From Macrostomum lignano (taxonomy: Eukaryota), in assembly GCA_002269645.1 (NCBI GenBank), contig NIVC01000107.1, positions 186,001-250,000 of the forward strand: 64,000 nucleotides of DNA. Direction: 5' to 3'. Shown here in pieces: positions 1 through 63,274 of the stretch (the first letter of the stretch is position 1; every line of letters starts with the position of its first letter). The notes under the pieces were generated by a model. That model had not been told where the DNA came from, made no database searches, and saw only the letters and a list, made by a program, of their open reading frames with translations. A program made the translations under genes and the position numbers.

Positions 1-688
1 ACTGTCAGGTGAAATCGATGCCGGTCGGCGTAGCCGGTGACGCGAGAGCCCGGCTGGTCTGTAAGATTTTATAAAGTACTTTTAATTGAATCTTCGATAC
101 CTTAAAAGTTGAAGTCTAGCGAACTGACCATCGATGTAACCAGTGAAGAAGTCTTCAAGCAGCTCTTTGGTTTTGAGCTCAGATCGGGAGCCATTCTGCG
201 CGATCAATGTGCTCACGACGGGATGCAGCTGGCTTGCGTAGGAGCGGTCGGGTTTGAGCACCAAATGGAACTGCCTGCATTGGATTTGTGCGAACAATAA
301 AGGTTAGTGCCACAATAGGGTGGTGGAACATGCTGAAGCAGCAGTCTGCTCGCACCAACCTGCTGAATGCGACAAAGTGCAGGTGCTGAGTGGGTAGCGC
401 ATCCGAGCCCAGGCTCCTCCTGCTGACAAGTCTGGCCGGCTGCAGCAGCTCAAACTCGCTCAGCTGGGAGTGCAGATATTCTAAAAAGTGACGTGGATTT
501 TTAAAATCCATGGAAAGCAAAGCAAAGCAATGTGCCTGTGAAAGGAGCTGCTTACCGTCTACTGACTGGGGTGATTTCGCACCGTTTACTTGATGAGGCT
601 GCAAAGCTATCAAGATGCAGAGGCATGCAAGCTGTCCACGTGACGGGAGACTCAAGCCGATCCATTTTCTGTGGCTGTGAGACGCCAT
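1..688 (-). CDS. ADAM17: ADAM17/TACE-like metalloprotease, 5' exons (signal peptide + prodomain): 688-556, 480-360, 274-129, 58-<1
   Basis: The spliced translation MASHSHRK...LACLCILIALQPHQVNG..VD-E-YLHSQLSEFELL..QHLHFVAFS-R-QFHLVLKPD..EDFFTGYID-D-QPGSRV resembles the ADAM17 prodomain as I recall it (EKLDSLLSDYDIL..FSALKRHFKLYL..DFFTGHVVGEPDSRV). All three introns are GT-AG with compatible phases (1,2,1). Confidence 0.8.
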
Positions 689-924
689 TCGCCCAGCGAC
701 CGTTCGGTCTGAGCTCCTCAGCGGGAAAATTATTAACAAACAAATCGCCTTTTTCAAAACCCAAATGAGGTCAATTATTTCTCTAAGAGAACTCCGGCCA
801 CAGACAAGTCTAAAAGCTGTCAAGTGCGCTGCAGCAAGGCCAGAAACTGAAAAAAGCATCACAAAGCGCTTCTCGGGGCTCAAATACATGTATAGAGGTT
901 TGATAGGCTCTTAAATTACTTCAT

Positions 925-15774: not shown

Positions 15775-17205
15775 ATGGCCAGCTCCGCCTCAGCTGATGC
15801 GGGAGGCTTCGCCGAGTTCGGCAACATCTTCGCCGACGAGCTGGTCGGCCTCACAGACGACCAGCTGGTGGCCCTGAGCGCCAGGCGCCTGGCAGCCCGC
15901 CTCGCCTCGCTCTCCAAGCCCACCTCGGAATCTCGACGGCCTTCGAAAAAAGTCCCTGTTGACCAGGGCGACCTGCTTGACGGTCTGGACGATGACGGCG
16001 CCGACGAGCTGGAGGATGAGGATGAGGAAGACGAGCCGCCGCTGTCCGATGCCGATGCGGACTCCGAGGAGGCTGCAGGCAGCGATGACGATGATGCGAT
16101 ATTCCGAGGCGGCGAGCTGGACGAAGCTGAGCAGGAGGAGCTGCTGGCGATGGAGGCCGAGGAGGCGGACGGCAGCGCCGATGACGAAGAAGACAGCGAG
16201 GCGGAGGCGGACCTGGCGGCCCGGTTCGACCGGGAGGACCTGCCGTTCGACAGCTTGAAGTTCGACGACTTCATCGACCCGGCCAAGCGGCCAGGGAATG
16301 AACCGCCTGATGAAGAGGAAGAGGAGGAAGAAACCGGGGAGCGGGACGATGATGAGGAGCCGGAGGAGGCTGGCGAGGCCGAGGGTCCGCAGTCGAAGTT
16401 CGAGCGCAGCCAGAAGCGAATGCGCGAGGAGATCGCCGCTCTGGAGGACTCGCTGGTGCGGCCCGCGCCCTGGCAGCTGCGCGGCGAGATCGAGGCGGCT
16501 GAGCGGCCCGAAGGCGGCCTGCTGGAAGAAGACCTGGACTTCGATCACATCGGCCGGCCGCGGCCGCTGGCCTCAGAGGAGCTGGAGTCGCGCATCCAGG
16601 AGCTGGTGAGGGCGCGCATCAAGGAGGCCAAGTTCGACAGCGTGGCCAGGAAGCACCGGCCCGAAGAGCGGCCCGCCGAGTACCGCAAGGCGCTGCTGCT
16701 GGACACGGAGAAGCCGCGGCCTCTTGCCGAGGTGTACGAAGGCGAGTTCGCCAAGCAGCAGACGGCCGAGGCAGCCAAGTCGCTGCCGCAACACGAGGAG
16801 ATCCGGCGCGACCTGAACTCCCTGCTGGCCCGGCTGGACCGCCTGTCCGGCCTGCACTTCGCCCCGCAGAACCCGCTGCCCCGCGTCCGGGTGGTCAGCG
16901 GGGCGCCCGCTCTGGCCATGGAGGAGGTCCGTGGCACGGCCGCCTCTGCCGAGGCCTCGCAGGCGGCCCCGGAGCAGCTGGCTGACAAGCCGGGCCGGCG
17001 GGCCGGCAAGGAGGTCGGCGACAGCGAGCTGAGCCGCACCGACCGGCTGCGGCGGCGGCGCAAGGCCAAGAAAGGCCAGCGGCTTCGGCGCCAGCGGGCA
17101 GAGGCGGCGGGCCTGGCATCGAAGGATCCGAGGCAGGCGGCTCTCGCGCAGCTCAAACAGCAAGCGCGAAAACCCGGGTCCCGAGTTCGAATCCTGGCGT
17201 CCTAA
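15775..17205 (+). CDS. MPHOSPH10: U3 snoRNP protein MPP10 (single-exon ORF, 476 aa)
   Basis: An acidic N-terminal tract is followed by SKFERSQKRM..PWQLRGEI..RPEGGLLEEDLDFD..RIKEAKFDSV..HFAP..MEEV..DRLRRRRKAK, typical of Mpp10. Confidence 0.92.
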   Translation: MASSASADAGGFAEFGNIFADELVGLTDDQLVALSARRLAARLASLSKPTSESRRPSKKVPVDQGDLLDGLDDDGADELEDEDEEDEPPLSDADADSEEAAGSDDDDAIFRGGELDEAEQEELLAMEAEEADGSADDEEDSEAEADLAARFDREDLPFDSLKFDDFIDPAKRPGNEPPDEEEEEEETGERDDDEEPEEAGEAEGPQSKFERSQKRMREEIAALEDSLVRPAPWQLRGEIEAAERPEGGLLEEDLDFDHIGRPRPLASEELESRIQELVRARIKEAKFDSVARKHRPEERPAEYRKALLLDTEKPRPLAEVYEGEFAKQQTAEAAKSLPQHEEIRRDLNSLLARLDRLSGLHFAPQNPLPRVRVVSGAPALAMEEVRGTAASAEASQAAPEQLADKPGRRAGKEVGDSELSRTDRLRRRRKAKKGQRLRRQRAEAAGLASKDPRQAALAQLKQQARKPGSRVRILAS

Positions 17206-18351: not shown

Positions 18352-20737
<2,386 letters not shown>

Positions 20738-24887: not shown

Positions 24888-29213
<4,326 letters not shown>

Positions 29214-33411: not shown

Positions 33412-34497
33412 ATGCCCGCCGAGGAGGAGCGCAGAAAGAGGCGCGGAATTTCCTGGCGCCGGCTGTTGAAGTCGCTAATTTCCTGTAAAACAAGCCGACC
33501 TGAGCGGCTCGCTGATGAGGCAGCCCAGCCTCCGCAGCCGCCGATTCCCTTCCCCAGCTTCTCCGTCCGCGGGCTCGAGTTCCGCCTGCTCGGACCGCTC
33601 GGCAGCGGCGCCTACGGTGATGTCTTCCTGGCCCGCTGCCCGGAGCGGCCGCCGCCCCCGCTGCCCCACCTGCTGGCGCTGAAGCTGCACACCCGCGCCC
33701 GCCCGCCCGCCTGCCCGCCGCCCGACTTCGCCGCCTCGCAGCGACTCGCCCGAGCTCTGGCCGGGCCGCCGCACCCGCTGATTGTCGGCCTGCTTGGTCA
33801 CGTGACCACCCACGGCTCTGACCGGCTCACCCTCATGGAGTTCTGCCACCGCGGCGACCTCCAGCGAGCCGCCGGCCGGTGCTGGGAGGCCGAGGCCGCC
33901 TTCGTCAGCCTGGAGGTGGCGGAGGCGCTCGGCCACCTGCACGAGCGTGGCGTCTGCCACCTGGACGTCCGGCCGTGCAACGTGCTGCTCAGCGGGCCCG
34001 GCCACTGCCGACTGGCCGACTTCAGTCTGGCCGATTTTCGGCCGCCCGGCCGCCAGCTGGAGCTCCGAGCTCGGTTCGCCTGCCGGGCTGACTGCGGCAG
34101 CGACTGGCTGCCACCGGAGATCCGGCGGGACGGCAGGCCGAGCCCGGCGGGCGGCTTCACCGACTGGTTCGGCCTCGGCGCGCTGGCCGCCAGCCTCCTC
34201 GCCGCCGACCACTCGGAGGACGTCGGGTCGCCGGATTTCCGACATTTCGTGTCCCGACTGCGGTGCCCACAGCCCGGCCATCGGCTAGGCAGTCAGGGCG
34301 GCGTGGCCGAGGTGCTGAGCCACGGCTTTGTGACCGGCCGGGCCGCCCGGCTGCTGGAGATCCCGCTGCTGCCCGCGGCCGAGGCGGACGGCGGCGGAGT
34401 GGCCGGCCTGCGGGACCTGCTGAGGCGGCAGCGGCTGCGGCCGCCCGACCGGCTGCTGCGGCTGGTGCCCGAGCTGGGAACTGCGGGTGCTGAGTGA
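33412..34497 (+). CDS. Divergent Ser/Thr (AGC-like) protein kinase, possibly a pseudokinase; single-exon ORF, 361 aa
   Basis: Kinase subdomains in order: LGSGAYGDV, ALK, LMEFCHRGDL, HLDVRPCNVLL, LADFS, WLPPE, TDWFGLG. Confidence 0.85.
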   Translation: MPAEEERRKRRGISWRRLLKSLISCKTSRPERLADEAAQPPQPPIPFPSFSVRGLEFRLLGPLGSGAYGDVFLARCPERPPPPLPHLLALKLHTRARPPACPPPDFAASQRLARALAGPPHPLIVGLLGHVTTHGSDRLTLMEFCHRGDLQRAAGRCWEAEAAFVSLEVAEALGHLHERGVCHLDVRPCNVLLSGPGHCRLADFSLADFRPPGRQLELRARFACRADCGSDWLPPEIRRDGRPSPAGGFTDWFGLGALAASLLAADHSEDVGSPDFRHFVSRLRCPQPGHRLGSQGGVAEVLSHGFVTGRAARLLEIPLLPAAEADGGGVAGLRDLLRRQRLRPPDRLLRLVPELGTAGAE

Positions 34498-43035: not shown

Positions 43036-43434
43036 CCACTCGCGCGCTTTCAGCAGCTCCCACTCCCCTCGTCCCGGGGACTCCGCTGCGACCTGCCTGT
43101 CGAAGCCTCTGCCCTCCCCAACCCTCCCGCCAGGACTCAGTCGTGCATTATTTTTCCCCCTCGCGTTTTCCTCGAACGCCTTTCGATGAATTCTCGTCAT
43201 TTTTTTCTCTTCCCACTTTATTGGTCTCATTTTCTTCTAGATCCCTAATGGGGAGGAGCTCAGATCCCCAGACTCTCTTCCCCATCTCCCCTCGCTCCGG
43301 CTCGCAGAGTCAGCAGGTGGCGAGCGAGGTCGCCTCAGGTGAGAGGAGGCTGGCGGGCCGGATGAAGCAGCTTGCCCGCCGTGCTCACACCTGTTCGCGA
43401 TTTAGTCGGTGCTGGGAATAACCGGATAGTGTCA

Positions 43435-44120
43435 GTTCATGAGTGAGTTCATGAGTGAGTTCATGAGTGAGTTCATGAGTGAGTTCATGAGTGAGTTCAT
43501 GAGTGAGTTCATGAGTGAGATCATGAGTGAGTTCATGAGTGAGTTCATGAGTGAGTTCATGAGTGAGTTCACGAGTGAGTTCATGAGTGAGTTCATGAGT
43601 GAGTTCATGAGTGAGATCATGAGTGAGTTCATGAGTGAGTTCATGAGTGAGTTCATGAGTGAGATCATGAGTGAGTTCATGAGTGAGTTCATGAGTGAGT
43701 TCATGAGTGAGTTCACGAGTGAGTTCATGAGTGAGATCATGAGTGAGTTCATGAGTGAGTTCATGAGTGAGTTCATGAGTGAGTTCATGAGTGAGTTCAT
43801 GAGTGAGTTCATGAGTGAGTTCATGAGTGAGTTCATGAGTGAGTTCATGAGTGAGTTCATGAGTGAGTTCACGAGTGAGTTCATGAGTGAGTTCATGAGT
43901 GAGTTCATGAGTGAGTTCATGAGTGAGTTCATGAGTGAGTTCATGAGTGAGTTCATGAGTGAGTTCATGAGTGAGTTCATGAGTGAGTTCATGAGTGAGT
44001 TCATGAGTGAGATCATGAGTGAGATCATGAGTGAGTTCATGAGTGAGTTCATGAGTGAGTTCATGAGTGAGTTCATGAGTGAGTTCATGAGTGAGTTCAT
44101 GAGTGAGATCATGAGTGAGT
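43435..44120. repeat. 12-bp minisatellite (ATGAGTGAGTTC) x ~57
   Basis: Read directly from the sequence. Confidence 0.95.
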
Positions 44121-45250
44121 GACACTCGTCTCAGTTCAGCAGCTCCGGGCAGCCAGGTGAATCATTCCATCCCCCAACCCGCCCCAGCTGTCAGCGCCCC
44201 TGCCAACTTCCAAAAGAAGCTGGGATGGCCATGCCGTGTGAGCACTCACTCAGCAGCAGAAGCAGAGAGTTCAGAATTTTGTGGCTGTGCCACCGAGCAG
44301 GCTGAGGGGCTCGGGCCACTTAGGATCGACTCGCGTACTCGCCCTGCTCTGCCCGCCTAATTGATGAAGAGAGGGAGAGGCTGGAGAGCAGGCGGAAAGG
44401 AACCAGTGAGCGAAGATGCTGAAGTTGAAGTTTAAAAGATGCTGAGTCCTCCCTACTCAAGCTTATCGATCTGATGAAGAAGAAATGTTTAAGAGTCTGC
44501 AGCCAGTCCGCTTTTGTTTAACCGCGTGTCCCAATTAGCCGAAATGCCCCATCGGGTCTGGGCTGAAATCGCGGAGCATTTCGCGGGAAGTCACGATCGA
44601 AGCGGGGCGAAGCAAAGAAACGAATATTGCTGTCCATCTCTCACAGACTCAATTGAGGATTTCGTGTCGCTCATTTTTCCCAAGGGAGCATCTTTTATTC
44701 ATGCAGCTCTCCAGCTCCTCGATGAAGCTGATTTCCCAGTCTCCATGCGGGACATCGCATCTCAATTCCCATGAGGTTTCCCTCAGGCTGGGAATTGCAA
44801 TGCAGGGATTTTGCCCGCCAGACTCTCAGCTGAAGCAGACAATCCATGCAGAAAGAAAGCGGAATTTCGGGGGGGGGCTCTAGCCGGAGGGATGCTGGCT
44901 CAGGTGTAAAAAAATTACACTAGCTGCTGATGAAGCATGGGATTCTGGGGGAGACAGGTGGGCGCGCCTAGACCCAGATGAGTAGGTTGGGCTGGGCGAG
45001 ACACTGCAGCGGACCGGGGACTGGCTGCCTGCTCTGGCGAATCAGGTGGCGGCCAGAGGGGATGCTAAAATGGGGGATCATTTTAGCAGAGGAAGGAACA
45101 GGGCAGAGGAGGAACAGAAGAACTGCAGGAGAGACGGAAAGACCTCATCGCTGAGGATTTTGCTTGCAGCAGCCGCCTACGCGCATTTTCCCATCGCTGT
45201 TGCTCTTCGGACTGTCAGGGGAAATTTATCCCAACCATAGCGCACCCACC

Positions 45251-47608
45251 ATGCCGCCGCCGCCGCCGCCGCCGCCGATGCTGCTGATGCTGCTGCTTCT
45301 CGCCGCCGCGGCCGCTGCACAGCCGCCTCCTCCAGCTGCATCGCCGAGCTCCACGCCGAGCCCGACGCCGCTGGAGGAGGCGGCGCTCGCCGAAGCGCTG
45401 TCCGTCGTGCGCCACGACTTCCGGTTCCTGCGGCACGAGTGGGCCTACACTGCCATCAAGTACCGCGGCTTCATGCGCCACTTCGCCGCGCCCTGGCGCC
45501 TCGTAGCCAATCTTGGCGGCGCCTACACGGTGGGCGGCTCCGTCTACTTCAACCGCTGGGCCTGGGAGAAGGCGCTGGCCACGCTGACGGAGTTCTCCAG
45601 CGAGATGGAGCGCTACCACCGGGTGTACCGCGCCGTCCGGTCAGGCGGCCGCCTCCGCCGGCACTGGCTGGCGCGCTACCCGCGCCTGGCGCGGGACACC
45701 ATCGATTTTGTTGACTTTGTCGAGCGCCACTCGGCCCAAGTCTCCGACTGCAGCGGCCGCCCGATCCGCGCCTTCCTGGCGCCTGGCGTCTCCTACGGCG
45801 AAGGCGGCGACAACGCCACGTGCGAGCTGCTGCGGCTGGCAGGCGACATCTTGGCCGACGCCACCGCCGGCCGCCTGTCCGAGGCTCTGATTGGCTATGT
45901 TCGGCTGTCCGAGCTCGCCTGGTCGGCTGATGCCTGGCCCGGACAGTCGGGCCCAGAGTCGGACATCCGCCGGCCAGCCGCCGTGCCTGGCGAGTCCTCG
46001 GCGACATCCGACGCCGCCGCCGCCACCGACATGGCTGAGCAGCCAACTTCGAACCGCTCGTCGCGGCCGATCGACGCCCGGAGCCTCGCCCGGCAGATTC
46101 TTGGCCACGCGCTGCTGCACCTGCGCCGCTATCGGCCCCGCCCGCCGGCCGCCGGCCTGCCCGACTTCTACTGTCGGGTCGTCCGCGAAGACCTCGACGG
46201 CCGGCTGGCACAGCAGCTGGACGCCGGCGAGCTGGTGGAGCTCAATGCCGTGCTGGAGCAGTGCCGAAATGCCAGCAGGGGCTCCGCGGCCTCGAAGGAC
46301 ATTGCGGTGGTGTCGAAGGCCTACACGGAGCTGCTGGGGCTGTGGGAGCGCACGCGGCGCCAGCTGTGGCGGGAGTACTCGGCCTACAGGCAGTACCGCA
46401 GCCGCATCCCCGCCATCCTGGCCGCCAAGTCCGCCATGCGGGCCGTCCTGCCGCTCATCGCCGCTGTCGGCCTGCTGCTCAACGCCGCCGTGCTGATCTT
46501 CTACGGCCGATGGGCTTGTCGACACGGCGGCGGGCGAAGCCTCCTGATCGCCCTGCTGGCGCTCAGCGACTCGGCCCTACTGGCCGTAGCTCTGGTGTCG
46601 CTGTTCACCGACAACTACATGGAGCACGACCACAGCCTGCGGCCCAGCGGCGCCGCCGATCTCTGGTGCAAGTTCCAGCCGCACCTGTACAACCTGGCCG
46701 CCGAGACCTCCGCCTACCTGCTGGTGGTGCTGGCGGCCGAGCGCTTCCTCGCTGTCCGCGCCTGCTGCTGCAGCGGCGGCGGCCACAAGCCGCTGCCACA
46801 GCGCCGGCTCTGGGTCCTGGCGCTCACCGCCTTCTGCTCCGCCTGCATCCTCAACTGCCTGCTGGTCATTGGCGACGAGCTGGCGGCCCCGGCCAGGTCC
46901 ACGGTCGGCCGGCAGTGCGTGCAGTACGTGCGCCTGCGGCACTTCGACTCCAACCTGGCCTACGTGACCCGCGCCAAGCCGCTGCTGAACGCGCTGGCCC
47001 GCAGCCTGGCGCCCTTCGGCCTGGTGCTCGGCCTCAGCCTGGCCACCTGCCGGCTGCTCTGCCGCCGCGGCGCCTACCGGCTGCTGCTCCGCCAGGACGA
47101 GGCGCGCGGCGAGCAGCCCGAGCTGCCGGCGGCCGTGGGCCAGCTGTGCCTGGCGCTGGCCTACCTGCTGCTCACCGCCCCCGCCCCGGTCACCCACGCC
47201 CTGTTCATGACGGCCCACGCCGACCGGCTGGTTGTGAAGCTCGCCAACGGGCTGATGGACGAGTCCGACCCGATGTTCCGCGGCCACTGGCAGCGCCTCG
47301 GCCGCCTCACCGTCGCCCAGTACGTGGCGGAGTTCGGCCTGCTGCCCGCCAGCGCCGCCTGCTGCTTCTTCGCCTTCGCTGCCACCGACCGCGCCTTCCG
47401 CGGCTTCGTGCGGGCGGCCCTGCGCGGTAGGTCGCCGAGCCCGGCGTCCGCGGCTCCTGCGTCGGCTGTCGGGGAGGCCGCGACGACCGCCATCGCCGAC
47501 TTGTCGGACCCGGCGATCGGTCAGGCAGCAGAGATGGCCGGTGCTGAGCCCGCGGAGCGGCAGCGAAGGGTTCAGGAAGCCGACTGGGAGCAGACTGACC
47601 TTATTTGA
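45251..47608 (+). CDS. Class A (rhodopsin-family, peptide-receptor-like) GPCR with signal peptide and ~370-aa N-terminal ectodomain; intronless, ~785 aa
   Basis: Starts at accATG 45251 with the hydrophobic leader MLLMLLLLAAAAAA. Seven hydrophobic segments include GLLLN (TM1), LALSD (TM2), WCK..AAERF (TM3) and conserved prolines in TM5 and TM6. Confidence 0.85.
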   Translation: MPPPPPPPPMLLMLLLLAAAAAAQPPPPAASPSSTPSPTPLEEAALAEALSVVRHDFRFLRHEWAYTAIKYRGFMRHFAAPWRLVANLGGAYTVGGSVYFNRWAWEKALATLTEFSSEMERYHRVYRAVRSGGRLRRHWLARYPRLARDTIDFVDFVERHSAQVSDCSGRPIRAFLAPGVSYGEGGDNATCELLRLAGDILADATAGRLSEALIGYVRLSELAWSADAWPGQSGPESDIRRPAAVPGESSATSDAAAATDMAEQPTSNRSSRPIDARSLARQILGHALLHLRRYRPRPPAAGLPDFYCRVVREDLDGRLAQQLDAGELVELNAVLEQCRNASRGSAASKDIAVVSKAYTELLGLWERTRRQLWREYSAYRQYRSRIPAILAAKSAMRAVLPLIAAVGLLLNAAVLIFYGRWACRHGGGRSLLIALLALSDSALLAVALVSLFTDNYMEHDHSLRPSGAADLWCKFQPHLYNLAAETSAYLLVVLAAERFLAVRACCCSGGGHKPLPQRRLWVLALTAFCSACILNCLLVIGDELAAPARSTVGRQCVQYVRLRHFDSNLAYVTRAKPLLNALARSLAPFGLVLGLSLATCRLLCRRGAYRLLLRQDEARGEQPELPAAVGQLCLALAYLLLTAPAPVTHALFMTAHADRLVVKLANGLMDESDPMFRGHWQRLGRLTVAQYVAEFGLLPASAACCFFAFAATDRAFRGFVRAALRGRSPSPASAAPASAVGEAATTAIADLSDPAIGQAAEMAGAEPAERQRRVQEADWEQTDLI

Positions 47609-47759
47609 CCTCGCCGGACAGACTGCTGACATTTTCATTTATCCTCCGGATTGAAAATGCACTTGGCTGTTGTTGTGTATTTACCTGGCAGTTGCGAATT
47701 GACCTCGGAACATCCAAGGGTTTTTTGTACAAGTTGACCTTGGATGACTCCCAGTTGTT

Positions 47760-48008
47760 TATTGTTGACCTCAGATGACCCCATTTGTCCATGGTTGACC
47801 TGAAATGACCCCATTTGTCCATGGTTGACCTGAAATGACTCCATATGTCCTTGCTTGATCTCGGATGATCCCAGTTGTCCATGGTTGACCTCGGCTGACC
47901 TTAGTTGTCCATGATTGACCTCGGCTGACCTTAGTTGTCCATGATTGACCTCGGCTGACCTTAGTTGTCCATGATTGACCTCGGCTGACCTTAGTTGTCC
48001 ATGATTGA
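47760..48008. repeat. 30-bp repeat (TTGTCCATGATTGACCTCGGCTGACCTTAG and variants) x ~8
   Basis: Read directly from the sequence. Confidence 0.9.
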
Positions 48009-49810
48009 CATTTGATGCAACCAGTTCGCCATCTGGAGAACTTGAAAAAAGCAGCTGAGAGCTTCATCTTGCGCACCTGCGTGGCTTTTTATCCAAACGA
48101 ATTTCGTCCCTCTCGGCGCCGCGGCAGTTTGTCTTCGAACCGCGGCATCCAAAACTTGCCCGATACTTTTAACTTTGGAGTAAAGTTTTTTGATTTGTTG
48201 TTGCTGTTGGCTGTTGCCATTTTCTGAATACTTTAAAGCAGAAATAGCAAATATGTATCATAAAGTTAGCCCTTAATCCGCGCTACTTGTCTCTGCAAAA
48301 TCAATAATCAACCTCAAATAAAGTTCTTTCGCAGAGTTCAGTGCCAGCAATTCTTTTTTCATTTCATTGTCCAGATAAAAAGCTGACATATTTGATTGAC
48401 AACTATAAGGCCAGGTAATTTCAATGGCTCCAAAACAGTTGCTTTAGACACCTGAGATTTCCTGGAATTTTGACCGGGCTGCCTGGCCGGCTGGCACGCG
48501 ACCCCCATTATCATAGCTATTCCCCCTCTCAGTCAGATTTCCCAATAGAGGAGCGGGGCCCGATGCAGTCAGCTGAGCTCAACGGGAAATGCCAATTATG
48601 AAGATGAGCCCGCTGCAGAAAAAATGTCGCGACTATATGGCCACCGGCTAGCAGAGATTGCTGGAGCGGCTCATCTGCAGCTCTAAATCGGGATTCCAGG
48701 CTTGGCATGGGAGGCGCATCGCAACGATAATTGTGGCCTCATCAACTCAATTGGTTGCTGCATAGGTGAAGTGGATGCCATGAATGGCGCTGTGCTGCTG
48801 CTTTGGCGCAACTTCTGATCAGTTCGGCATGCGAAATGGCCAGTGGAATGTGCAGTTATTGCGCCATATAAATGAGATTATCCTATCGATAACTCCGCTT
48901 ATACCATGGGGGTTCGGAGAGCAAGGGCTGCACTAGTTCTGCTTTTTGCACTTCTCTGGCTGGAGTAATGATGAATTCATATACTCGTATAACCTTACTT
49001 CCCTTGCCATCTAATATTATTCAACTACATGGAAGTTTTATAAATATCAATGGACTTTTTAAATGTTTCATTAATCCCCTTTGAGTTGAGTTGATCCTCA
49101 TACAGACTTGATGTCATCGATTTTCGTCGGACTTCAGTCGCAGTTTAATCACTAATCACAAACACAATCTGTAGGGTATGCAGCGGCCCTGGATTCCTAA
49201 CCGTCAGATAAGTTCACTCTGTGCCCTAGGGGTTGGGCTCTCATGGATGCGAATTGCGCGACAACCATCTAGCAATTTTTCGCGCACACGCCATTTTATA
49301 GTTATTCAAAGACACATGTAGGAGTTACATATGAATGGGGCTTGAAATACAAGCTGACTCAAAAGATGCTTGCACCTTGCACAATGTTTTTTAACCTATT
49401 CGACGAGGTAAGCGTAGTATTAAACATTAAACAACCAGAACAGAACATACAAAACATGATAACGTCAGACTCATTGATTCTAATTTCATCGCAATATAAT
49501 TATGAAGGTTTGAAATGATACATTGTAATTTTAACGGTAGAACGATTGATATCTTCAAAAATAATTTGAGTTAAAATCCATTCCTTTATTTTAGAAGCAG
49601 TTAGAAAAAGTTTGCATACCTATTTAATACTAGTATATAAACTAATGTTGTTTTTCTTTCTTTTTCATAGAAACTGTAAATTTCAAAACACTATACGTCA
49701 CGTTACTGCAAAAATTCACATCTTTATATTTTTTCCTTACTGTCTCTATTAAAGTCATTTGGCTTTGGCTTTAACTTCTAGAATTTAAAAATCATCTTAC
49801 ATTGAAAGTA

Positions 49811-52800
49811 ATGGAAAACGCAACTTTAAATGATACCCTGAATGGTACAGCTGGAAATGCCACATTTACAGCTACAACCGAAGGCTTTTTGTTGGCCTAT
49901 TCTAGTCTTTTTACCATGGCTATTGTGCCTATTATCATTGGATCACTGCAGTCTGTTGCCGCTAACAAGCTAAATAAGGTAATTTTATAATTTTAAGCAT
50001 GCATTCAATTTCCCCAAAATAAGCCTGCTGTTATAATTTACTTTTTAGTTAAAAATAATATATATTATAAATACTTGCTATTATTGTTATGAAAACTTTT
50101 AATTTAATGTCGCTTTAATTTGCCTTAAATACAGAATTATAAAACATCTTAATTTAATATTAATTTCAAATATATGCTTTCCTATTCCTAAAGTTGACTT
50201 GCTTTTTTCTAAATTGATTTATTCAAGTTAACTATTCTTTAAGTTGAACCTTTCTTTTAGTTTGACCTATTAGGCCTACCTTCAAATGAATCTTAATATC
50301 TAGTAATATCTTGATATGGCATAACTATGGTTTTGTTGGTTATATTATTTCTTGTTTTGAATTTGTTCCAGCGCACATAGAAATGGCTCATTATATTGTT
50401 TTAAGTTAAAAAAAGATGACCCACCACCAAAAAAGTTCAAATTGGAGTTAGAAGTCACAAGAAAGATAATTAGACAGGATAATAGTGTGACACCCAGTAG
50501 AGAAAGTTGCCAAACACATTCCGTGGATATAGACGGCGCCACAGAAATTCCTGCAGATGAGTTTTGAATAGACCATCACTTGTCCCATACATGTTGCAAA
50601 ACTTCGCCTTGCAATGCACCCATGTTCCCTCAATAGTGTTCGTATAAACCGTTGGGTCCTGGGGGTCTACAAAATGGAGCCGGTGGTTTACAGACATGTG
50701 ATTTGGCAGTGTATTGTACGCAACCCAACCATCTGTGATGATTCATGTTCTGGGAAGCACATAAGTTGGCACAGCTCTGCAGGTAGATGCAAATCGCCTA
50801 CCGGAATGATTGTCATAGGAGCCAATGCCGCAATGGTTGTCCAACCATTTCTACGTGCACTGGAACAAATTGGAAACAATAAATAATATAACGAACAAAA
50901 CTATAGTTATGCCCTTGATACTTGACTATGTATTGTCTGCTTTGATAGTAAGTGAAATTTTATAGTTGTTTTGATATATGACATATATTATAAATACAAT
51001 ATATTTATATTATTAAGATTTATTTTATTGCCAAATAGATCAATCAAAGAGAATTTAAATTAAATTGTATTTATATAATATTAAAAAAATTAATATGGTA
51101 AAACTGGTATTTTTTATTAAACTGTATAGAGCTAGTTCATTTTAACTATCTTTGTTTTACTTTCAACTTTTTAAAAAAGTTAAACCTAAAATTTTTTTTA
51201 ATTCAGTTTCCTTTTTTCATAAAAGGCTGGCTATTCTTTCTGATCAAAATGTAGCTATTGTAACTAATGACTATGTACATGGAGACTATGCCAAATATAA
51301 ACTTTATCATTTTTGTATGCTAATTGTATAGATTGATTGGGACTTAGAACTTTTGGTCTCATTTGCTATCTTGGCAATCTCTATATGACAAGCTATATGC
51401 CAAGAGGGCATACCAGGCCTCTCTATATGCCAAGTTGTATGCCAATGGTATACTCTAGGTCCCTCTGTATGCCAGAATTTTCTGGCATTTATGTATACCA
51501 TCTGTAGTCTGGGGTGTGCACAGTTGGCATCTATGACTTAAGAAAATAGTATGCATGTACACCTGGTATGTATTTCATAGAATCACATGGAAGAATTAGT
51601 TTTAAGTGGAAAAATATTGAAAAAGTTCAATAAAAGGTTCATATTTTAGCATAAATTCTAAACTTTTAAGCTTTTAAGCTCATTAATAGTTGCATTAAAA
51701 CAAGTTTATAATACATATCAATTTTCTACTATAAATTGTATAGAACAAAAAAGGATGAATGATCAACTAAATTATTAGCCAAAAAGGGTCCTGTACACAA
51801 TACAAATCATTTATTGTAACAACATTAGCTTACATTTTGAGAGTGCAGATATATATTAAATTTTTGGCATGAATTTGTAACTCTTCAATTTTTGTTTGGG
51901 TGTGCACCTAGCATGATTTGGAATATGGCAGTAATCATACACTTTGAGAATAGCTACTTTAGTAACAGCCACTTTAGTAACAAAGCATGACCAATTTGGT
52001 AATAGCCATTTTGGTAACAAGTGAGACTAATATATTAATAGACTAACTATAATAAATGTTGCTTATTTTAAAGCTTTGTAAGGGTTGAGGAGTTAAGAAA
52101 CAAATATTTTTATGCCATATTTAGTAGGGCTTAAGTGAAGAAAATATACTGCTAGCTATTTTTTTGTACAATAAAAATAAGAAATAAAAAAGCCTTTGGA
52201 AATGAGTTTTTTGTTTATATTGGAATTTATTATGTTGGTTAAATTATTATTGAATGGTTGCAAATAGATTTAATATCATTAAATGTTATATGGGAAATTA
52301 TGAGAGTCATCCATTTTGGTTATTGATTTAAATGATAGGTACTCATGAACAATAATTGTAATTTTGCAACTGTAATTTAAACGTAACTTAATTTGAACAG
52401 GAAACTGGAGAAGTGGAAACCATGACATCAAAGGATGCCGCCATGTTCCCTCTGTATGCCAGTGGTGCACTGTTTGGCATTTATCTGTTTTTCAAGGTGT
52501 GTATTGTGTTAATTAACTTGCCATTGAATTGCCTAAGAAACGCTTAACTTTATTACTGTTGCATTTCTGTTATCATTCCTGACTGCAGTTGATATCTAAG
52601 GAGTACATCAACATGCTGCTGGCTTTCTACTTTTTCCTGCTTGGAGTTCTGGCCCTCACGCACGTGCTCAAGTGAGTTAAGATTTTTTACAAGCTGAGCA
52701 CCTTGAAGTTATTCTGCTTTTGTCCCTTAGCACTGCTGCTTCACTTGTCACTCACCCAGCCTTGTCACTCCCCCAGCCTTGTCACTCCCCAGCCTTGTCA

Positions 52801-55054
52801 CTCCCCCAGCCTTTTCACTACCGCCGCCCTTGTCACTCCCCCACCCTTGTCACTCCCCCACCCTTGTCACTCCCCCACCCTTGTGACTCCCCAGCCTTGT
52901 CAATCCCCCAGCCTTGTCACTCCCCCAGCCTTTTTACTACCGCCGCCCTGATCACTCCCCCAGCCTTGTCACTCCCCAGCCTTGTCAATCCCCCAGCCTT
53001 TTCACTACCGCCGCCCTGATCACTCCCCAGCCTTTTTACTACCGCCGCCCTGATCACTCCCCCAGCCTTGTCACTCCCCCAGCCTTGTCACTCCCCCAGC
53101 CTTGTCAATCCCCAGCCTTGTCACTCCCCCAGCCTTGTCACTCCCCCAGCCTTGTCAATCCCCCAGCCTTTTCACTACCGCCGCCCTGATCACTCCCCCA
53201 GCCTTGTCACTCCCCAGCCTTTTCACTACCGCCGCCCTGATCACTCCCCCAGCCTTGTCACTCCCCCAGCCTTGTCACTCCCCTAGCCTTGTCACTCCCC
53301 CAGCCTTTTCACTACCGCCGCCCTTGTCACTCCCCCGCCCTTGTCACTCCCCCCACCCTTGTCACTCCCCCACCCTTGTCACTCTGATACCCTTGTCACC
53401 CTTCTGCCCAGCTCTGAGGCGCAAAAGCAGTTCGGGCCCGGCTTGACCCCTGACCCGCCCCTGTCCCAGGCCGGTCTACCACAGGCTGGTGCCCGCCAGC
53501 CTGCCCAACCGCAGCTTCAACATCCGCATCCTGGAGTTCGTCTCCAAGCTGAAACCAGCCGCTGCCGGGGAAGCCAAGGAGAAGGAGAAGCAGCAGACTG
53601 GCGAAAAGGCCGAACAGAAGCAGCCAGCCTCTGATGAGGCTGCCCCCGCCGGAGAAGAGGCCGCTGGCAAGGGTGAGTGAGCTCGGATCGTACAATACAA
53701 GTCTTGGATTCCCTTCTTAGATCATTGTTGGGAATCTTAGGGGAGATCTCACTTCTTAGATGGGAATCTTAGGGGAGATCTCACTTCTTAGATGGGATTT
53801 TTAGGGGAGATCTCACTTCTTAGATGGGAATCTTAGGGGAGATCTCACTTCTTAGATGGGAATCTTAGGGGAGATCTCACTTCTTAGATGGGAATCTTAG
53901 GGGAGATCTCACTTCTTAGATGGGAATCTTAGGGGAGATCTCACTTTTTAGATGGGAATCTTAGGGGAGATCTCACTTCTTAGATGGGAATCTTAGGGGA
54001 GATCTCACTTCTTAGACAGGATTCTTAGGGGAGATGTCACTTCTTAGATAGGAATCTTATGGGAGATCTCACGTCTTAGGTAGAAATCTTAGGGGAGATC
54101 TTACTTCTTAGACGGGATTCTTAGGGGAGATCTCACTTCTCAGATGGGATTCTCAGGGAAGATCTCACTTCTTAGATGGGATTCTTAGGGGAGATCTCAC
54201 TTCTTAGATGGAGTCTAGGGTAGATCTCACTTCTTAGATGGGATTCTTAGGGGAGATCTCACTTCTTAGATGGGAATATTAGGGTAGATCTCACTTCTTA
54301 GATAGAAATCTTAGGAGAGATCTCACTTCTTAGATGGGATTCTTAGGGGAGATCTCACTTCTTAGATGGGATCATTGTTGGTGCCATCGCTCACCCCGCC
54401 TGGCCAGGCTCGGAGCTGTGGCTGAACCTGGACTTCGACCTCCTTGACCTGGCCAACCTGGCCGTGTCTGCCTGCGTGGGCCTGTGGTACCTGGCCACCC
54501 GCCACTGGCTGGCTAACAACGCCTTCGGCTTGGCCTTCGCCATCAACGCCATCGAGCTGCTGCACCTCAACAAGGTGGCCACCGGGGCCATCCTGCTCAG
54601 CGGCCTGTTCATCTACGACGTCTTCTGGGTGTTCGGCACCAACGTGATGGTGACGGTGGCCAAGAGCTTCGAGGCCCCCATCAAGCTGGTGTTCCCGCAG
54701 GACCTGCTGGAGAAGGGCCTGGCGGCCGACAAGTTCGCCATGCTCGGCCTCGGCGACATCGTCATCCCCGGCATCTTCGTGGCCCTCCTGCTGCGCTACG
54801 ACGCCGCCAGGGGCCGCTCCGGCCGCCCGTACTTCTGCTGCTGCCTGGCCGCCTACTGCGCCGGCCTGCTGGCCACGATCGTTGTGATGCACGTGTTCAA
54901 GCACGCCCAGCCAGCGCTGCTGTACCTGGTGCCCTGCTGCCTGGGCGCCCCGCTGCTGCTGGCCCTGGCCAGGGGCGAACTGGGCTGCCTGCTGCGCTAC
55001 GAGGACACGGACGGGGCCGCCGATAGCCGCACGGGCGCCAAGAAGACCGACTGA
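49811..55054 (+). CDS. HM13: Signal peptide peptidase (minor histocompatibility antigen H13); exons 49811-49978, 52401-52496, 52589-52671, 53470-53672, 54408-55054
   Basis: ETMTSKDAAMFP, YDVFWVFGT (YD), LGLGDIVIPG (GxGD), QPALLYLVP and a C-terminal KKTD are present. Intron phases 0,0,2,1 are consistent. Confidence 0.95.
50318..50913 (-). mobile_element. Internally deleted Merlin (IS1016/IS1595-like) DNA transposon in HM13 intron 1
   Basis: ~70-bp TIRs start with GGCATAACTAT, and the 8-bp TSD is CTTGATAT/CTTGATAC. The transposase tail reads IITDGWVAYNTL..HMSVNH..FVDP..TNTIEGTW..LQEFLWRR. Confidence 0.9.
52745..53390. repeat. 17-18-bp minisatellite (CCTTGTCACTCCCCCAG variants) in HM13 intron 3
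   Basis: Read directly from the sequence. Confidence 0.9.
53740..54370. repeat. 32-bp minisatellite (CTTAGGGGAGATCTCACTTCTTAGATGGGAAT) x ~20 in HM13 intron 4
   Basis: Read directly from the sequence. Confidence 0.95.
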
Positions 55055-58101: not shown

Positions 58102-61100
58102 TCAGGGTGGTCCGCCGGTCCGTCCTGCAGCGTGATCTTCCGTTGGGAAGAAACTGGCTCGTCTAGTCGCCCGAAGGAACTGGATGAGCCGTGGGATGCT
58201 GTCGGGCTGGCAAACCTCGTCAATGGACGGGTTCGGCCCGAGGTAGCGTAGCCGGTCTCTGTTAAAGAAAGGGCAGTGACAGACAAAGTGCTGAGCATCT
58301 TCATTGTCGCACTCGCAAAAGGGGCAAATTTCGCTCTCGAGGTCGCCTCGGAGGAAGCAGTGCCTGGCGAGGTAGCCATGGCCGGTAAGGGTCATGACAA
58401 GGGCTCGAATATCCTTCCGATTCTGGTTCAGAAGGATGTTTCTGAGCCTGTGAGACGGGCAAGGAACCGCGGCACGAGATTGCCGGCAGTTTTGGGTGCC
58501 CGCCCATCTGTCCCTGTGGAGGGAGTCAGCCCAGTCGTCGATCTGACGATTGATGACTGTCAAGGGCATAGGGACCAGGGGGCAGGGCCGAAAAAAGAGC
58601 CAGAGCCGCCCCTCTTGGCGAGGGTGTCTGCCAGCTCGTTCCCCGGAAACCCTGCGTGCCCTGGGATCCACTTCAGCCTGACAGTATTGCTTCTGGCCAG
58701 GAGGTTGAGCTGCCGGGCGCAGTCGGCGACTGTCCGGGAGTTCGTTGTGGTGTGGCAAAGGGCCTGTAAGGCCGCTTGGCTGTCGGAGTGGATGACAATA
58801 GTCTTTCCTCTCGTAACCTTGGCGTTTAGCTCTGCAGCGCAAGAGCTGATGGCAAGGACTTCGTTCTGGAAGACTGTGGAGAGTCTACCAGTGTGCTGGG
58901 CATGCGTGGCAATTACGCGGCCGTTGATGATGATGCAGACCCCAAAGCCGGCGCGACCGTCTTTGATGGATCCGTCCGTGTAGCAATGGACCTCCTGGAA
59001 ATTCCAGTGGTCATTGGCAGCATCCCTAGAGGGGATGGTGACCTTGTAGCGCTGAAAGAGGTTGAGAGTGCGGGGTTCGCCGTCAGATAGGACGTGGAGC
59101 CCGCCGCTGTCTCTCAAGTCCTTGAGGCAGAGGTCAGCGTGGGGCAGAAGCTTGCGCTTAGCCATGGCCCTATGGGGCTGGATTCGAATGCCAGCGTCAG
59201 CTAGACGGCGGGCAGTCTTAGCCGCTTCCCTGCGGACAAAGATGTCCAGCGGAGGAATGTTGAGGAAGGCGTTGAGGCCATCGTAAGGAGCAGACGGAGG
59301 GGCGCTCATGATCGTGCGACAAGCGCGCCCTTGCGCTCTCCTGAGAGCCTCTAGACAGGTCTTTATCTGCAGGGCGCTAGCCCAGATCAGGCCGCCATAC
59401 GAGATAGCGGGCCTAACCATTGCAGTGTAGATCCACCAGAGGCGCTTGGGGGTGAGCCCCCAGGTGGTGCCGACGGCCCTGCGCAATTGCGCGAGGACTG
59501 CGAAGGCCTTTTTGGCTTTTGTTTGAACGTGGGGAGACCAGTTCAGCCTGTGGTCCAGGGTAATACCCAGACATTTAGTCTGCTTGCAGAAGGGGATTTC
59601 CCTTCCGTAAAGCGTGAGCGGCCGAATCTGCCACTTGGTCCTGCTGGTGAACATGATCGCTGCGGTCTTAGTCTCAGAGAGCCTTAAACCACAGCGGTCC
59701 GCCCATTGCTCAGCAGCGTAGATGAAGTTCTGAAGAAGGTCCCTGAGGGTATCAGGGGACGGACCAGATGCCACCGCGGTGACATCGTCCGCATATCCAA
59801 CTTTCAGAATGGGGTCAGGCCGAACATCCCGGAGGAGCTCATCGATGACCATATTCCAGAGAACTGGAGACAGCACCCCACCTTGCGGGCTACCTTTGCA
59901 GACGGGGACCGTCCTCTGGTAGCCCAGCAGACTGGCGGTGGCCGTGCGATGGCTGATCATGTACATGATCCATCTGGTGAGATGTGAGTGCGTTAGCCTC
60001 TCACAAAGAGCTCTTCGGAACGCCTCAAAGAGGACGTTATCGAAGGCGCCAATGATGTCCAGGAAGATCCCCAGAGCAAAGCCACTACCAAGCACGGCCT
60101 TCTCGAGTTTATCGACCAGGACGTGCAGCGCGCTTTCAGTGGAGCGACCCGCCCGAAAAGCGTGCTGGTTCTCGCTGAGAGGTTTGTTCTTCAGCTCAAC
60201 AGAGAGAAGGCGCCAAAGCACCAGTCTCTCCATCAGCTTGACCAGGGAGGAGGTCAAGCTGATCGGTCTGAAGGATTTGATAGAATGGTAGTCCGGGCGG
60301 CCTGGCTTAGGGATAAAGATCACCTTTGCCTCGGTCCATGCCTGCGGGACATAACCAAGCGTGATGCATGCCCGAAGAAGGCTGCAAAGTTTGCGCAGGA
60401 AGCCTGGGCATTTAACCGCCTCTCTTAGAAGGGCCGGTACAATGCCGTCGGGTCCTGGGGCTTTGAAAGGCTTGAAGGAATTTGCCGCTCTCACAATGCG
60501 GTCCTCCGTGATGATAGATGCAGCCAGCGCGTGACCTCCCTCCGAGTGATCCGGAGTGGTCTGGTTAGCTGGCTCGTTAGGGAAAAACGCAGTGAGCATT
60601 ACATCAAGCGTTTCCCCTGGGTTGTCCGTGGACGTACCGTCGGTGCGTTTGACCGAGGAGAGCTTAGACATTTTGTCCAGCGTGAGCGCTTTCACAACTC
60701 TGGAGGTGGGGCGTGAGCCCTCTAGCTCCTCACAGTATTGTCGCCATTTTTGAGCCTTTGCATTCCTAACCTGCCTTTTAAACTCATGAATTGCTTCATG
60801 ATAGGCGGTTTGGTCTGCAGGGCTCTTAGTTTTAGTTGCTCTGCGGTGGAGTCTCTTAGCCCTGCGACGGAGGTTGCCGAGCTCGGGATTCCACCACGGC
60901 GCCGATTTTTTCCCTTTATAGGCTTTTAAAGGGCAGGACGCCTCAAAGGCGGCGGTTAGCGTCTCTGTCAAAACAGTCGCGCACTCATCCGCCTCTCGGC
61001 ACGACGTGATCGTGAATGGTTGGCCAGGAGACCGATGGAATTCCTTCAGGGCGAGCCCGAAGGTTTCCCAATCAGTATTTCTGGCGTTCCGTCTCCACAT

Positions 61101-61805
61101 AACACGAGTTGCGCTACGCGCGGCCATTAGGTTGAAGGAGATGAACTTGTGATCCGATAGTGAGGACACTGGAAGCACCCGCCACGCCCCAATACTCTGG
61201 TAGAGTCTGGGCGTTGCGAGCGTAGCGTCGATCACCTCCGACCACCGTCCGTTGTCAAAGGTAGGGGTGGACCCAGAGTTGCAGAACTCGAGGGTCGTAG
61301 AGGCAACGTAGGCTAGGAGGTCTTCGCCTCTCTGATTAATGCCAGTGCTGCCCCAGTGAGTGTGGTGGGCGTTGATGTCGCCGGCAACCATGAGCTCGTA
61401 GTTTTTGGCAGAGCAGAGCTCTACCAGCGTAGCGAGGGCTCTGGGGACGACCGCAGCATCGCCTGGTAGGTAAACCGAGGCAATGAGGGTGGTCTTCCCA
61501 GGAAGAAGGTCCTCGGATTGGATGACGCAGATGTCCCTGTTGGACAGGTCCGATCTGAGCCACGCACTGAGCGTTTTGCTCGCAAAGATGCAAGCTCTGG
61601 GAGGCTGGTTGGCCTCGCGAGGGTAAGTATAAAAACAATTGTAGCCAGCAGGGGCGTTTTGAGGCTTACCTCTGAGAGTCCAGGGTTCCTGGACGAGGAT
61701 GAGCCCCGGCTTGTCGAGCTCGGCGTAACGCATAAGGTTGACCGAGGCTGCGACGCAGTGCTGCAGATTAATCTGCAGGCAATGGATTCCCTGGTTGCTG
61801 ATCAT
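58102..61805 (-). CDS. LINE ORF2: APE endonuclease, reverse transcriptase, RNase H, C-terminal CCHC; one frameshift at ~58580
   Basis: QINLQH, VQEPW, GDINAH, SDH, APGPDG, FRPISL, QHAFR, QGGVLSP, YADD, YTDGS and WIPGH, then CPFC..EDAQHFVCHC in the shifted frame. Confidence 0.93.
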
Positions 61806-61807
61806 TA

Positions 61808-63274
61808 TCACGCAGTTGGGGAATCGTTGAGCAGGTCATCCTCCTCCTTTTCAGTGGTGGGTGACCCGCAGACCTCCATGGGAGTTTCAGCGTCCTCAGC
61901 AGTTAGGGTGGCTGTGGAGTCCTCCGCGGACGTGAGCCCAGCGTGGACGTTACCGTCGCCTCTCCTGCGTGCTTCGGTGCTGTCACTGCCCGTCCCCTCT
62001 GCCTCGTCGGTCAGGTCGATGCGGGTGGCGCCAGCCTCCTGGTGAGTCACAGACTCGAACCAGTCGGTCGGAGCCTCCCCGCTTAGAGTCTGGCCTTCTG
62101 GCTGTTGGGGTGGAGCGCGAGAAGCGCGGGCCCGCTCACGATGCGCACGAAGGTTCTTGGCCTGGTCCAGCGCGCGCTGGATCAGGCCGGACCTCCGGGT
62201 GCTCCTGGCGGGTCTGCGATTGCGATTTCCGGTTTCAGCAGCGCGAACTGCCTTACCGGGCATAGGATCGGCCGTTTGCCTCGGCTTCTTTGCCGGAGGA
62301 GCCTGGGCCCCAGTTCCGGTTTCGGAAGCTTTGGCATTCTTGGCTTCATCAGCTTTCCGCTCCTCGCAACGGAGGATGGTCAGCTGAGTCAGACCAATAT
62401 GAATTGTGGACTTAGGCGGCAAGCGCTTAGCCCAGTCATCAGAGAGCCCTAGGATCACCGTAGCCCCCTTCTCCTTGCGGGAAGTGGCGTGGTGTAGGAG
62501 CCCGTTGACCTTAAGGTCGGGGTGCAGCTTTAGCAATATTTGCCTAAGCTGATCTCCGGACTTAATGGCACTGCCGGCCGGGATCCAGACGCGAAAGCGC
62601 TGGGTCTTCTGTCGTTCGCCCTCGCTGGCGAAGACGAGCTTGCCGAGCTTCTTGGGCCAGTTCAGCTTTGGCAGAAGCTCGCGTAGATTGCGGCTGCTCT
62701 CCTCCGAGCTGCACCAGATGAAGATGCAGCCGTCGGTCTTGGCAGACTTGACCACGCTCACAGGGCGGCCCGCCAGGAGCTGGTCGATGAGCGCAGCATC
62801 GATGGTGCGCCAGGCACTGTCGAGCTCGTCGGCCGTGAGGTCCTGCTCTTCCCCGAAGACGATGACCGCCGGTTGGAGCTTGACCTTTGAGGCGTAGTTG
62901 GTGGCGGCGGTTCCCGAAGGCCCGGCCGCGCTTGTAGCAGGTATACTGGGTGGCTCACCAGCGGGGGTTGTATCCTGGGGGGCAGGGGTTGCTGTGGTTC
63001 CTTTCGGCCCAACAGCAGCCTCGCCCTCCCTAGGTTCCCCTTCCGCCGGTGGCCGGCCCGCAGTACCCCGTAGTCGCCGTCGCCGCTCGTTGCGGCGTTG
63101 GTTGCGGGTGCGTCGGGCTTCAGCGGAGGGCCCGGTTGCGCGTGCGGGCATGTCACCAGCCGAGCCGGCGGCAAGCCTATCTGCCCCCGGTGGGGCGGCG
63201 CTGGTGCCAGAGTCACCGGCCGGAGTTGCCGGGGCCCCGGCTTCAGCGGGGGTTAAAGAGGCGGATGACGCCAT
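61808..63274 (-). CDS. LINE ORF1 (488 aa)
   Basis: An intact ORF directly upstream of ORF2, with an Arg-rich N-terminal stretch and a globular middle region. No CCHC knuckle was seen. Confidence 0.85.
   Translation of the reverse strand: MASSASLTPAEAGAPATPAGDSGTSAAPPGADRLAAGSAGDMPARATGPSAEARRTRNQRRNERRRRLRGTAGRPPAEGEPREGEAAVGPKGTTATPAPQDTTPAGEPPSIPATSAAGPSGTAATNYASKVKLQPAVIVFGEEQDLTADELDSAWRTIDAALIDQLLAGRPVSVVKSAKTDGCIFIWCSSEESSRNLRELLPKLNWPKKLGKLVFASEGERQKTQRFRVWIPAGSAIKSGDQLRQILLKLHPDLKVNGLLHHATSRKEKGATVILGLSDDWAKRLPPKSTIHIGLTQLTILRCEERKADEAKNAKASETGTGAQAPPAKKPRQTADPMPGKAVRAAETGNRNRRPARSTRRSGLIQRALDQAKNLRAHRERARASRAPPQQPEGQTLSGEAPTDWFESVTHQEAGATRIDLTDEAEGTGSDSTEARRRGDGNVHAGLTSAEDSTATLTAEDAETPMEVCGSPTTEKEEDDLLNDSPTA

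Follow-up and report, generated by a model that had tools for sequence, protein, structure and literature searches.

Positions 45251-47608 (forward strand) of a 64,000-nucleotide stretch of the Macrostomum lignano genome (assembly GCA_002269645.1, contig NIVC01000107.1), referred to here as the window, hold a single uninterrupted open reading frame (ORF) of 785 codons, which probably represents a genuine, intronless protein-coding gene of this flatworm. Window coordinates are used throughout; adding 186,000 gives the coordinate on the contig record, in keeping with the 100% identity of window 23412-44497 to NIVC01000107.1:209412-230497. Taking the evidence together, we consider it fairly likely that the 785-amino-acid (aa) product is a lineage-restricted, highly divergent class-A-like (rhodopsin-like) receptor, in which a seven-transmembrane (7TM) core is preceded by an orphan ectodomain. 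The original prediction, made from the letters of the sequence, had placed a class A G-protein-coupled receptor (GPCR) and a long N-terminal region in one reading frame here, and that arrangement is borne out by the 785-codon frame and its uniform codon bias.

The coding status of the frame is carried by its length and its composition. Under the composition of the ORF itself, 785 consecutive stop-free codons have a probability of about 1e-5, and none of 300 mononucleotide shuffles reached 814 codons (the longest run was 594); the length is beyond chance and is not an effect of composition. GC content at codon positions 1, 2 and 3 is 0.71, 0.54 and 0.89, respectively, and third-position GC (GC3), measured in 300-nt windows, stays at 0.80-0.99 in the same frame from ATG to stop, with values of about 0.4-0.6 in both flanks. 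Exons in this window are recognisable by very high GC3, and the bias of the receptor ORF matches that of the other genes (0.83 for Mpp10 and 0.86 for a protein kinase). The roughly 390 codons preceding the first transmembrane helix (TM1) are coding and run in phase, without a break, into the 7TM part. No stop codon separates the two parts, which leaves space for neither an intron nor a second cistron, and the gene consists of a single exon. The gene is probably functional. No long terminal repeat or terminal inverted repeat flanks it. A pyrimidine-rich tract ending in AG lies 81 nt upstream of the ATG and is the same in the homeologous contig described below; from its sequence it is a possible 3' splice acceptor or spliced-leader trans-splice acceptor. 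Tandem arrays bracket the gene: 57 copies of a 12-bp unit (43434-44120) lie about 1.1 kb upstream, and nine copies of a 30-bp unit (47733-48009) begin 125 nt past the stop codon. The nearest canonical AATAAA on the 3' side is at 48317, 709 nt downstream, and does not fix the 3' end of the mRNA.

Hydropathy resolves eight hydrophobic segments in the product, which we read as a signal peptide followed by seven transmembrane helices. The signal-peptide-like segment (aa 1-23) reads P8 and then MLLMLLLLAAAAAA, with QPPPP after it, and the small residues before the glutamine suggest cleavage at this point. A paralogue from the same species (P0001, described below) has an equivalent segment, MPGPLLLALLMLPGALG, followed by QPGNG. 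These two signal peptides and the one-plus-seven layout point to an extracellular N-terminal domain. By the same hydropathy analysis about 365-370 residues lie between the removed signal segment and TM1, in agreement with the 370 or so initially estimated. This ectodomain is predicted to be mostly alpha-helical, a flexible linker connecting its two halves (Table 1). The linker keeps a GC3 of 0.83-0.84 in frame and shows no secondary structure in the model (aa 229-275); GC3 in the C-terminal half is 0.90-0.94. The last ectodomain helix (about aa 349-385), rich in Arg, is predicted to continue directly into TM1. No internal repeats were found in the protein. The ectodomain had been described as aromatic-rich, with a few cysteines and an NAT glycosylation sequon. 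The aromatic enrichment holds for a core at aa 55-130 (21% F/Y/W, with the motifs RHEWA, WRLVA, RWxWE and YHRVYR) and not for the ectodomain as a whole, where F/Y/W make up an ordinary 8.7%. The cysteines number four (167, 191, 308 and 338), and the NAT sequon (N188) is joined by two more, NRS at N268 and NAS at N340.

Among 1.84e9 representative proteins, an exhaustive phmmer (HMMER) scan picked out two relatives and no others. The first, P0001 (UniRef A0A1I8FML4), is an M. lignano entry named 'Autophagy-related protein 27'. Its residues 8-179 form an ATG27/mannose-6-phosphate-receptor-like domain, and its residues 184-343 open with a new Met and signal peptide and align to receptor aa 7-169 (43% identity, E 1.7e-30), thus spanning the signal peptide and the first 160 or so ectodomain residues. 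We read this entry as a chimeric gene model that has captured the start of a receptor paralogue. Synteny with its ATG27-like gene was considered and dropped, there being no ATG27 in the window. The second relative, P0002, is an environmental fragment encoded on a 1,044-bp contig (ENA assembly ERZ21788738). Its gap-free alignment to the receptor covers TM6, a long third extracellular loop (ECL3), TM7 and helix 8 (34% identity, E 1.5e-12), with the shared motifs C..AL.Y.LLT.P.P, DP.FR.HW and DR.FR, the last as DRxFR at the TM7/helix 8 junction. The ORF of the P0002 contig continues upstream through a TM5-like segment that itself lies behind a good splice acceptor, and since its GC3 is 0.61, P0002 comes from another organism. 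On these alignments the protein is under conservation at either end and in its long ECL3. The phmmer scan contained no Schistosoma, Schmidtea or other flatworm match beyond the M. lignano paralogue. Word-indexed homologue searches with the whole protein, a three-sequence alignment and an ectodomain alignment were empty and did not recover even P0001; scans of JGI metagenomes with ectodomain and TM5-TM7 patterns gave no confirmed relative; and a tblastn search found no paralogue inside the 64-kb window. IMG/VR viral contigs held no relative of either the ectodomain or the 7TM part, and a viral origin of the GPCR was dropped after these empty scans. We found no literature on ERZ21788738 or A0A1I8FML4.

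From its sequence, the 7TM core is rhodopsin-like over TM1-TM4, with strong remodelling of TM5-TM7. Pfam 7tm_1 was the sole family reported at E<=10. It scored 23.8 bits with the full-length sequence and 25.7 bits with the 7TM region by itself, a statistically significant match (E values 3.7e-5 to 9.3e-6) in which aa 430-557 correspond to profile positions 20-139 of 260. The top PDB sequence match, the vasopressin V1a receptor, was weak (E 0.005-0.009, TM1-TM3), and the description of the core as peptide-receptor-like has no other basis than this match. When the receptor is aligned to V1a with HMMER, N411, D440, C473 and ERF fall at canonical positions. Like class A receptors (PF00001; best structure V1a), the protein has an external N-terminus and seven transmembrane helices, with GN in TM1, LAxxD in TM2, a proline in each of TM5 and TM6, and helix 8, and it carries the hallmark residues N1.50, D2.50, C3.25 paired with a cysteine in ECL2, E/DRY (here ERF) and W4.50. 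Unlike them, it scores 23.8-25.7 bits on the family profile against a threshold of 30.5, has T in place of W6.48 and no NPxxY, and adds a signal peptide, an ectodomain of about 365 aa and an ECL3 of about 40 aa. A loop of this length is far longer than is usual for class A. The exchange of DRY for ERF, the absence of NPxxY and the long ECL3 had all been noticed at first reading and are upheld here. The third intracellular loop (ICL3) is short and basic, and helix 8 is amphipathic. P0002 likewise has neither CWxP nor NPxxY.

Several observations weigh against our reading of the ORF as a working receptor with an orphan ectodomain. The 7tm_1 score lies under the 30.5-bit gathering threshold, and the match covers TM2 to ECL2 only. 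With CWxP and NPxxY missing, G-protein activation of the canonical kind cannot be taken for granted. In the collection searched, no gene model with the receptor product is on record for assembly GCA_002269645.1. The search for paralogues sharing the fusion, proposed with the original prediction, produced the M. lignano fragment of the ectodomain start and no relative carrying ectodomain and 7TM core in one protein, P0001 and P0002 both being fragments. Residues 170-390 of the ectodomain have no homologue, and codon bias alone supports their coding status. Finally, AlphaFold2 run without an alignment gave a predicted local distance difference test (pLDDT) score of 40.3 for the full-length protein and 47.5 for aa 38-235, making the models unusable.

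These points leave room for four other explanations. The ectodomain could belong to a known extracellular or GPCR-associated family that has diverged beyond the reach of sequence methods, which would make the architecture a variant of one already described. The search results argue otherwise. Residues 38-390 match no Pfam family of any kind, even at E<=10, and the LRR, LDLa, EGF and GAIN families, whose absence had been predicted, are among those not matched. A PDB search with a two-sequence ectodomain profile gave no match (a GST hit was dismissed at E 0.92), and the HMMER scan returned nothing beyond the paralogue, so that a link to a known GPCR-associated domain, named in advance as a result that would refute the original prediction, was found in neither Pfam, the PDB nor the 1.84e9 proteins. 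The large ectodomains common in class A (LRR, LDLa) have a beta/solenoid build or are rich in cysteine; the present ectodomain is predicted to be all-alpha and has only four cysteines; in both AlphaFold2 models the secondary structure of the ectodomain (assigned with DSSP) is almost wholly helical, despite the pLDDT of 40-47. In favour of a hidden family are the sequence-based nature of these searches and the outcome of Foldseek, which on the better model returned noise (best E 3.3, TM-score at most 0.25). Flatworm proteins are noted for extreme divergence and 'hidden orthologues' (PMC6114109). We judge a disguised known domain to be unlikely.

It is similarly improbable, in our estimate, that the 7TM part is a rhodopsin-fold membrane protein without GPCR function, acting through another kind of signalling or serving as a scaffold or adhesion protein through its ectodomain. 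The loss of the TM6 and TM7 activation switches in both the receptor and P0002 would fit such a protein, as would the sub-threshold 7tm_1 match confined to TM2-ECL2. However, the elements on the G-protein side are retained, namely R3.50 within ERF, D2.50, N1.50, the short basic ICL3 and the amphipathic helix 8, and PROF1 receptors, which also keep only remnants of the class A motifs, are treated as GPCRs (PMC3261222).

A third explanation is that the ORF is a non-working gene, a duplicate that was inactivated not long ago or was never expressed, within a highly redundant neopolyploid assembly, and that is still open only for lack of time. The missing gene model, set beside the models that neighbouring Mpp10 (15775-17205) and the protein kinase (33412-34497) do have in the assembly, would be expected of such a gene. 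The published annotation of M. lignano is transcript-based, and in the assembly (Mlig_3_7, accession NIVC00000000), from a neopolyploid line, duplicated blocks with >=95% identity add up to 180 Mb (PMC5730564); high GC content, moreover, makes stop codons rare. Against this stand the 785 open codons, with their low probability under the ORF's own composition, and the very strong and uniform codon-position signal. A homeologous copy on contig NIVC01001006.1, about 96% identical in intergenic DNA (L003:20700-21086 against window 44950-45312), fits those duplicated blocks; the comparison covers the first 60 nt of the receptor gene, where the kinase-anchored locus L003 ends. Over this length the homeologue retains the ATG, its Kozak context and the reading frame despite nearby indels. 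Upstream of the ATG the two copies differ by indels of 1 nt (frame-breaking) and 21 nt, whereas within the gene the N-terminal proline run changes in frame, from 8 codons to 12 in the homeologue, through a (CCG)4 difference in a (CCG)n run. The retained ATG and in-frame length change, set against a frame-breaking indel in the 5' flank, argue for a start at 45251 rather than in an upstream TTG extension. Annotation around the gene is also sparse: the kinase is the sole call in 21 kb that also holds evident GC3-rich exons, and other evident genes of the window are without calls too, so the missing model is weak evidence against expression. PROF1-type intronless flatworm GPCRs are mostly absent from gene sets and yet confirmed by reverse-transcription PCR (PMC3261222). 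A dead or silent duplicate is in our view quite improbable.

A mature receptor devoid of the ectodomain, whether because translation or trans-splicing begins near M396 or because a proprotein convertase cuts at RTRR (367-370) and exposes a short new N-terminus that could serve as a tethered agonist, is very unlikely: an in-frame Met does lie at the start of TM1, M. lignano does trans-splice many mRNAs and has polycistronic precursors (PMC5730564), and the R-x-R-R motif does lie about 20-25 residues ahead of TM1, but without a stop between the parts an upstream cistron would read through, a start at M396 leaves essentially no extracellular N-terminus, R-x-[KR]-R motifs (three in the protein, two of them in the ectodomain) are expected by chance where Arg makes up 11.5% of the ectodomain, RTRR sits within a predicted long helix, RLRR at 134 is RLRA in P0001, and there is no GAIN domain or GPS. 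The initial suggestion of a tethered-ligand receptor accordingly finds no support in these same features.

The reading we prefer, a divergent class-A-like receptor with an orphan ectodomain, can be set beside several known systems. Orphan rhodopsin families restricted to flatworms have been described under the names PROF1/Srfb, Rho-L/R, Srfa/c and fwRhods (PMC3261222, PMC4862687 and PMC6114109). Among them PROF1 is lineage-specific, intronless and motif-eroded, and most of its members are missing from gene sets and yet transcribed (PMC3261222 and PMC6114109). Like these flatworm-restricted families, the present receptor is of flatworm origin, intronless, reduced to remnants of class A motifs, without significant hits outside its lineage and absent from gene sets. 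Two further PROF1 remnants fit, TM2 LALSD ([LI][AS]..[DE]) and TM6 Y...T.P ([FY]...[SAT].P), the latter matching the [F/Y]...T.P given for PROF1-II in PMC3261222. The TM3 motif does not fit (ERF, with E, against D[RK]x), and the TM7 motif [NSD][FG]..[YF] is absent. A PROF1 profile, built with hmmbuild from 12 full-length Schistosoma mansoni sequences (PMC3261222 supplement; Schmidtea PROF1 left out), gave the receptor 13.5 bits over TM3 only, below the 25.7 bits of the generic 7tm_1 profile, and membership of PROF1 was rejected. Unlike the flatworm orphan families, for which the accessible sections of PMC3261222, PMC4862687 and PMC6114109 describe no long ectodomain, the receptor carries one.

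Large N-terminal modules are found in other rhodopsin-type receptors. As in the LGR/glycoprotein-hormone receptors and RXFP1/2, a signal peptide and a large extracellular module precede a rhodopsin-type 7TM. Those modules are LRR solenoids, with or without LDLa and a Cys-rich hinge, whereas the present ectodomain has no LRR or LDLa, is predicted to be all-alpha and has four cysteines; we found no sequence kinship. The resemblance to tethered-agonist receptors, both protease-activated receptors and adhesion GPCRs, is one of general idea, suggested by the position of RTRR shortly before TM1. Unlike adhesion GPCRs, the receptor has no GAIN/GPS or 7tm_2 match and no conserved cleavage site, and its 7TM is not of class B2.

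The anatomy of the protein suggests how such a receptor might work. A cleavable signal peptide would place a glycosylated, mostly alpha-helical ectodomain of about 365 aa outside the cell, where it and the long conserved ECL3 might jointly form the surface for ligand recognition. The ectodomain could act as a ligand-binding or ligand-presenting module, coupled mechanically to TM1 through the continuous juxtamembrane helix. Binding would then be relayed to a 7TM core that retains the class A switches N1.50, D2.50, the C3.25-ECL2 disulfide, ERF and W4.50. G-protein coupling is plausible, since R3.50, D2.50 and N1.50 are all retained on the cytoplasmic side, together with helix 8 and an ICL3 that is short and basic. 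With TM6 and TM7 remodelled (Y...T.P for CWxP, and DRxFR at the TM7/helix 8 junction for NPxxY), coupling may be atypical, and without CWxP and NPxxY it is uncertain by which route the receptor would be activated. The 'new receptor architecture' first proposed is plausible, with one ORF and the first 60 nt of its homeologue as its basis. A further and more tentative possibility is that Macrostomum and its close relatives possess a restricted family built on a class A scaffold without CWxP and NPxxY, in which ligands are recognised by a new module combining a new all-alpha ectodomain with an enlarged, conserved ECL3.

Table 1 Features of the receptor gene, its product and two neighbouring elements in the window
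Feature	Residues (aa)	Window coordinates	Strand	Details
Candidate acceptor tract		45157..45169	+	attttgcttgcag
Start codon		45251..45253	+	first ATG of the ORF, context CCACCATG
Signal-peptide-like segment	1-23	45251..45319	+	MPPPPPPPPMLLMLLLLAAAAAA then QPPPP; hydropathy peak aa 5-23
Ectodomain, N-terminal half	40-230	45368..45940	+	predicted helices and one short hairpin; sequon N188
Linker	231-275	45941..46075	+	Pro/Ser/Ala-rich, predicted coil; sequon N268
Ectodomain, C-terminal half	276-390	46076..46420	+	predicted helices; C308, C338; sequon N340
Seven-transmembrane domain	391-712	46421..47386	+	hydropathy, Pfam 7tm_1, V1a alignment
TM1	about 391-420			N411 (1.50)
TM2	about 429-453			LALSD, D440 (2.50)
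TM3				C473 (3.25); ends in ERF 497-499
TM4	about 520-541			W521 (4.50); ECL2 cysteine C556
TM5	about 583-604			P587
TM6	about 625-650			YLLLTAP (T at 6.48; Y...T.P in place of CWxP)
Long ECL3	about 651-690 (~40 aa)	47201..47320	+	pattern H.D...L.N.L....DP.FR.HW conserved with P0002
TM7	about 690-712			reads LLPASAACCFFAFAATDRAF, without NPxxY
Helix 8 and cytoplasmic tail	713-785	47387..47608	+	helix 8 DRAFRGF; tail of ~65 aa ending TDLI
Stop codon		47606-47608	+	end of the 785-codon frame
HM13-like gene, exons		about 49811-49978, 52401-52496, 52589-52671, 53470-53672, about 54366-55054	+
Retrotransposon ORF1	488 aa	61808-63274	-
Retrotransposon ORF2	1083 aa	58560-61811	-	overlaps ORF1; endonuclease, reverse transcriptase and RNase H domains

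The window as a whole is compositionally uneven, with 44 strong tandem-repeat rows and GC content swinging from 31% to 67%. The Mpp10 homologue (forward strand) is a single exon of 476 codons, and an exact look-up of its product gave the homeologous contig NIVC01001006.1 only, not the window's own contig. It is adjoined by an acetyl-CoA acetyltransferase (thiolase) gene (18352-20734, forward strand), whose introns carry 24-bp tandem arrays. On the reverse strand, 25250-28722 holds exon-like ORFs rich in GC3 (0.83-0.90) with a coiled-coil-like product, for which no gene is called in the collection. Downstream of the receptor, a signal-peptide-peptidase (HM13-like) gene (49811-55054, forward strand) has at least five exons; its 5' exons are AT-rich against a GC3 of 0.93 in the last exon, an abrupt compositional change along a single gene, and its introns are packed with 17-bp and 32-bp tandem arrays. 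A non-LTR retrotransposon (58560-63274, reverse strand) is seemingly intact and may still be active.

Animal genomes commonly contain orphan receptors that are taxonomically restricted and whose N-termini cannot be assigned, so the present finding is of limited surprise. M. lignano is open to transgenesis and amenable to RNA interference, so the role of the gene is directly testable. If the fusion is expressed as we read it, it would add to class A a large-ectodomain architecture other than LRR/LDLa, and it would provide a natural rhodopsin-type core working without NPxxY or CWxP, with a bearing on the limits to which the activation machinery can be rewired. Should the restricted family also be real, it would amount to a new class A architecture and possibly a new activation route. 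As intronless, lineage-specific receptors of this type do not appear in the gene models or the protein collections that were searched, counts of flatworm GPCRs are likely to be underestimates.

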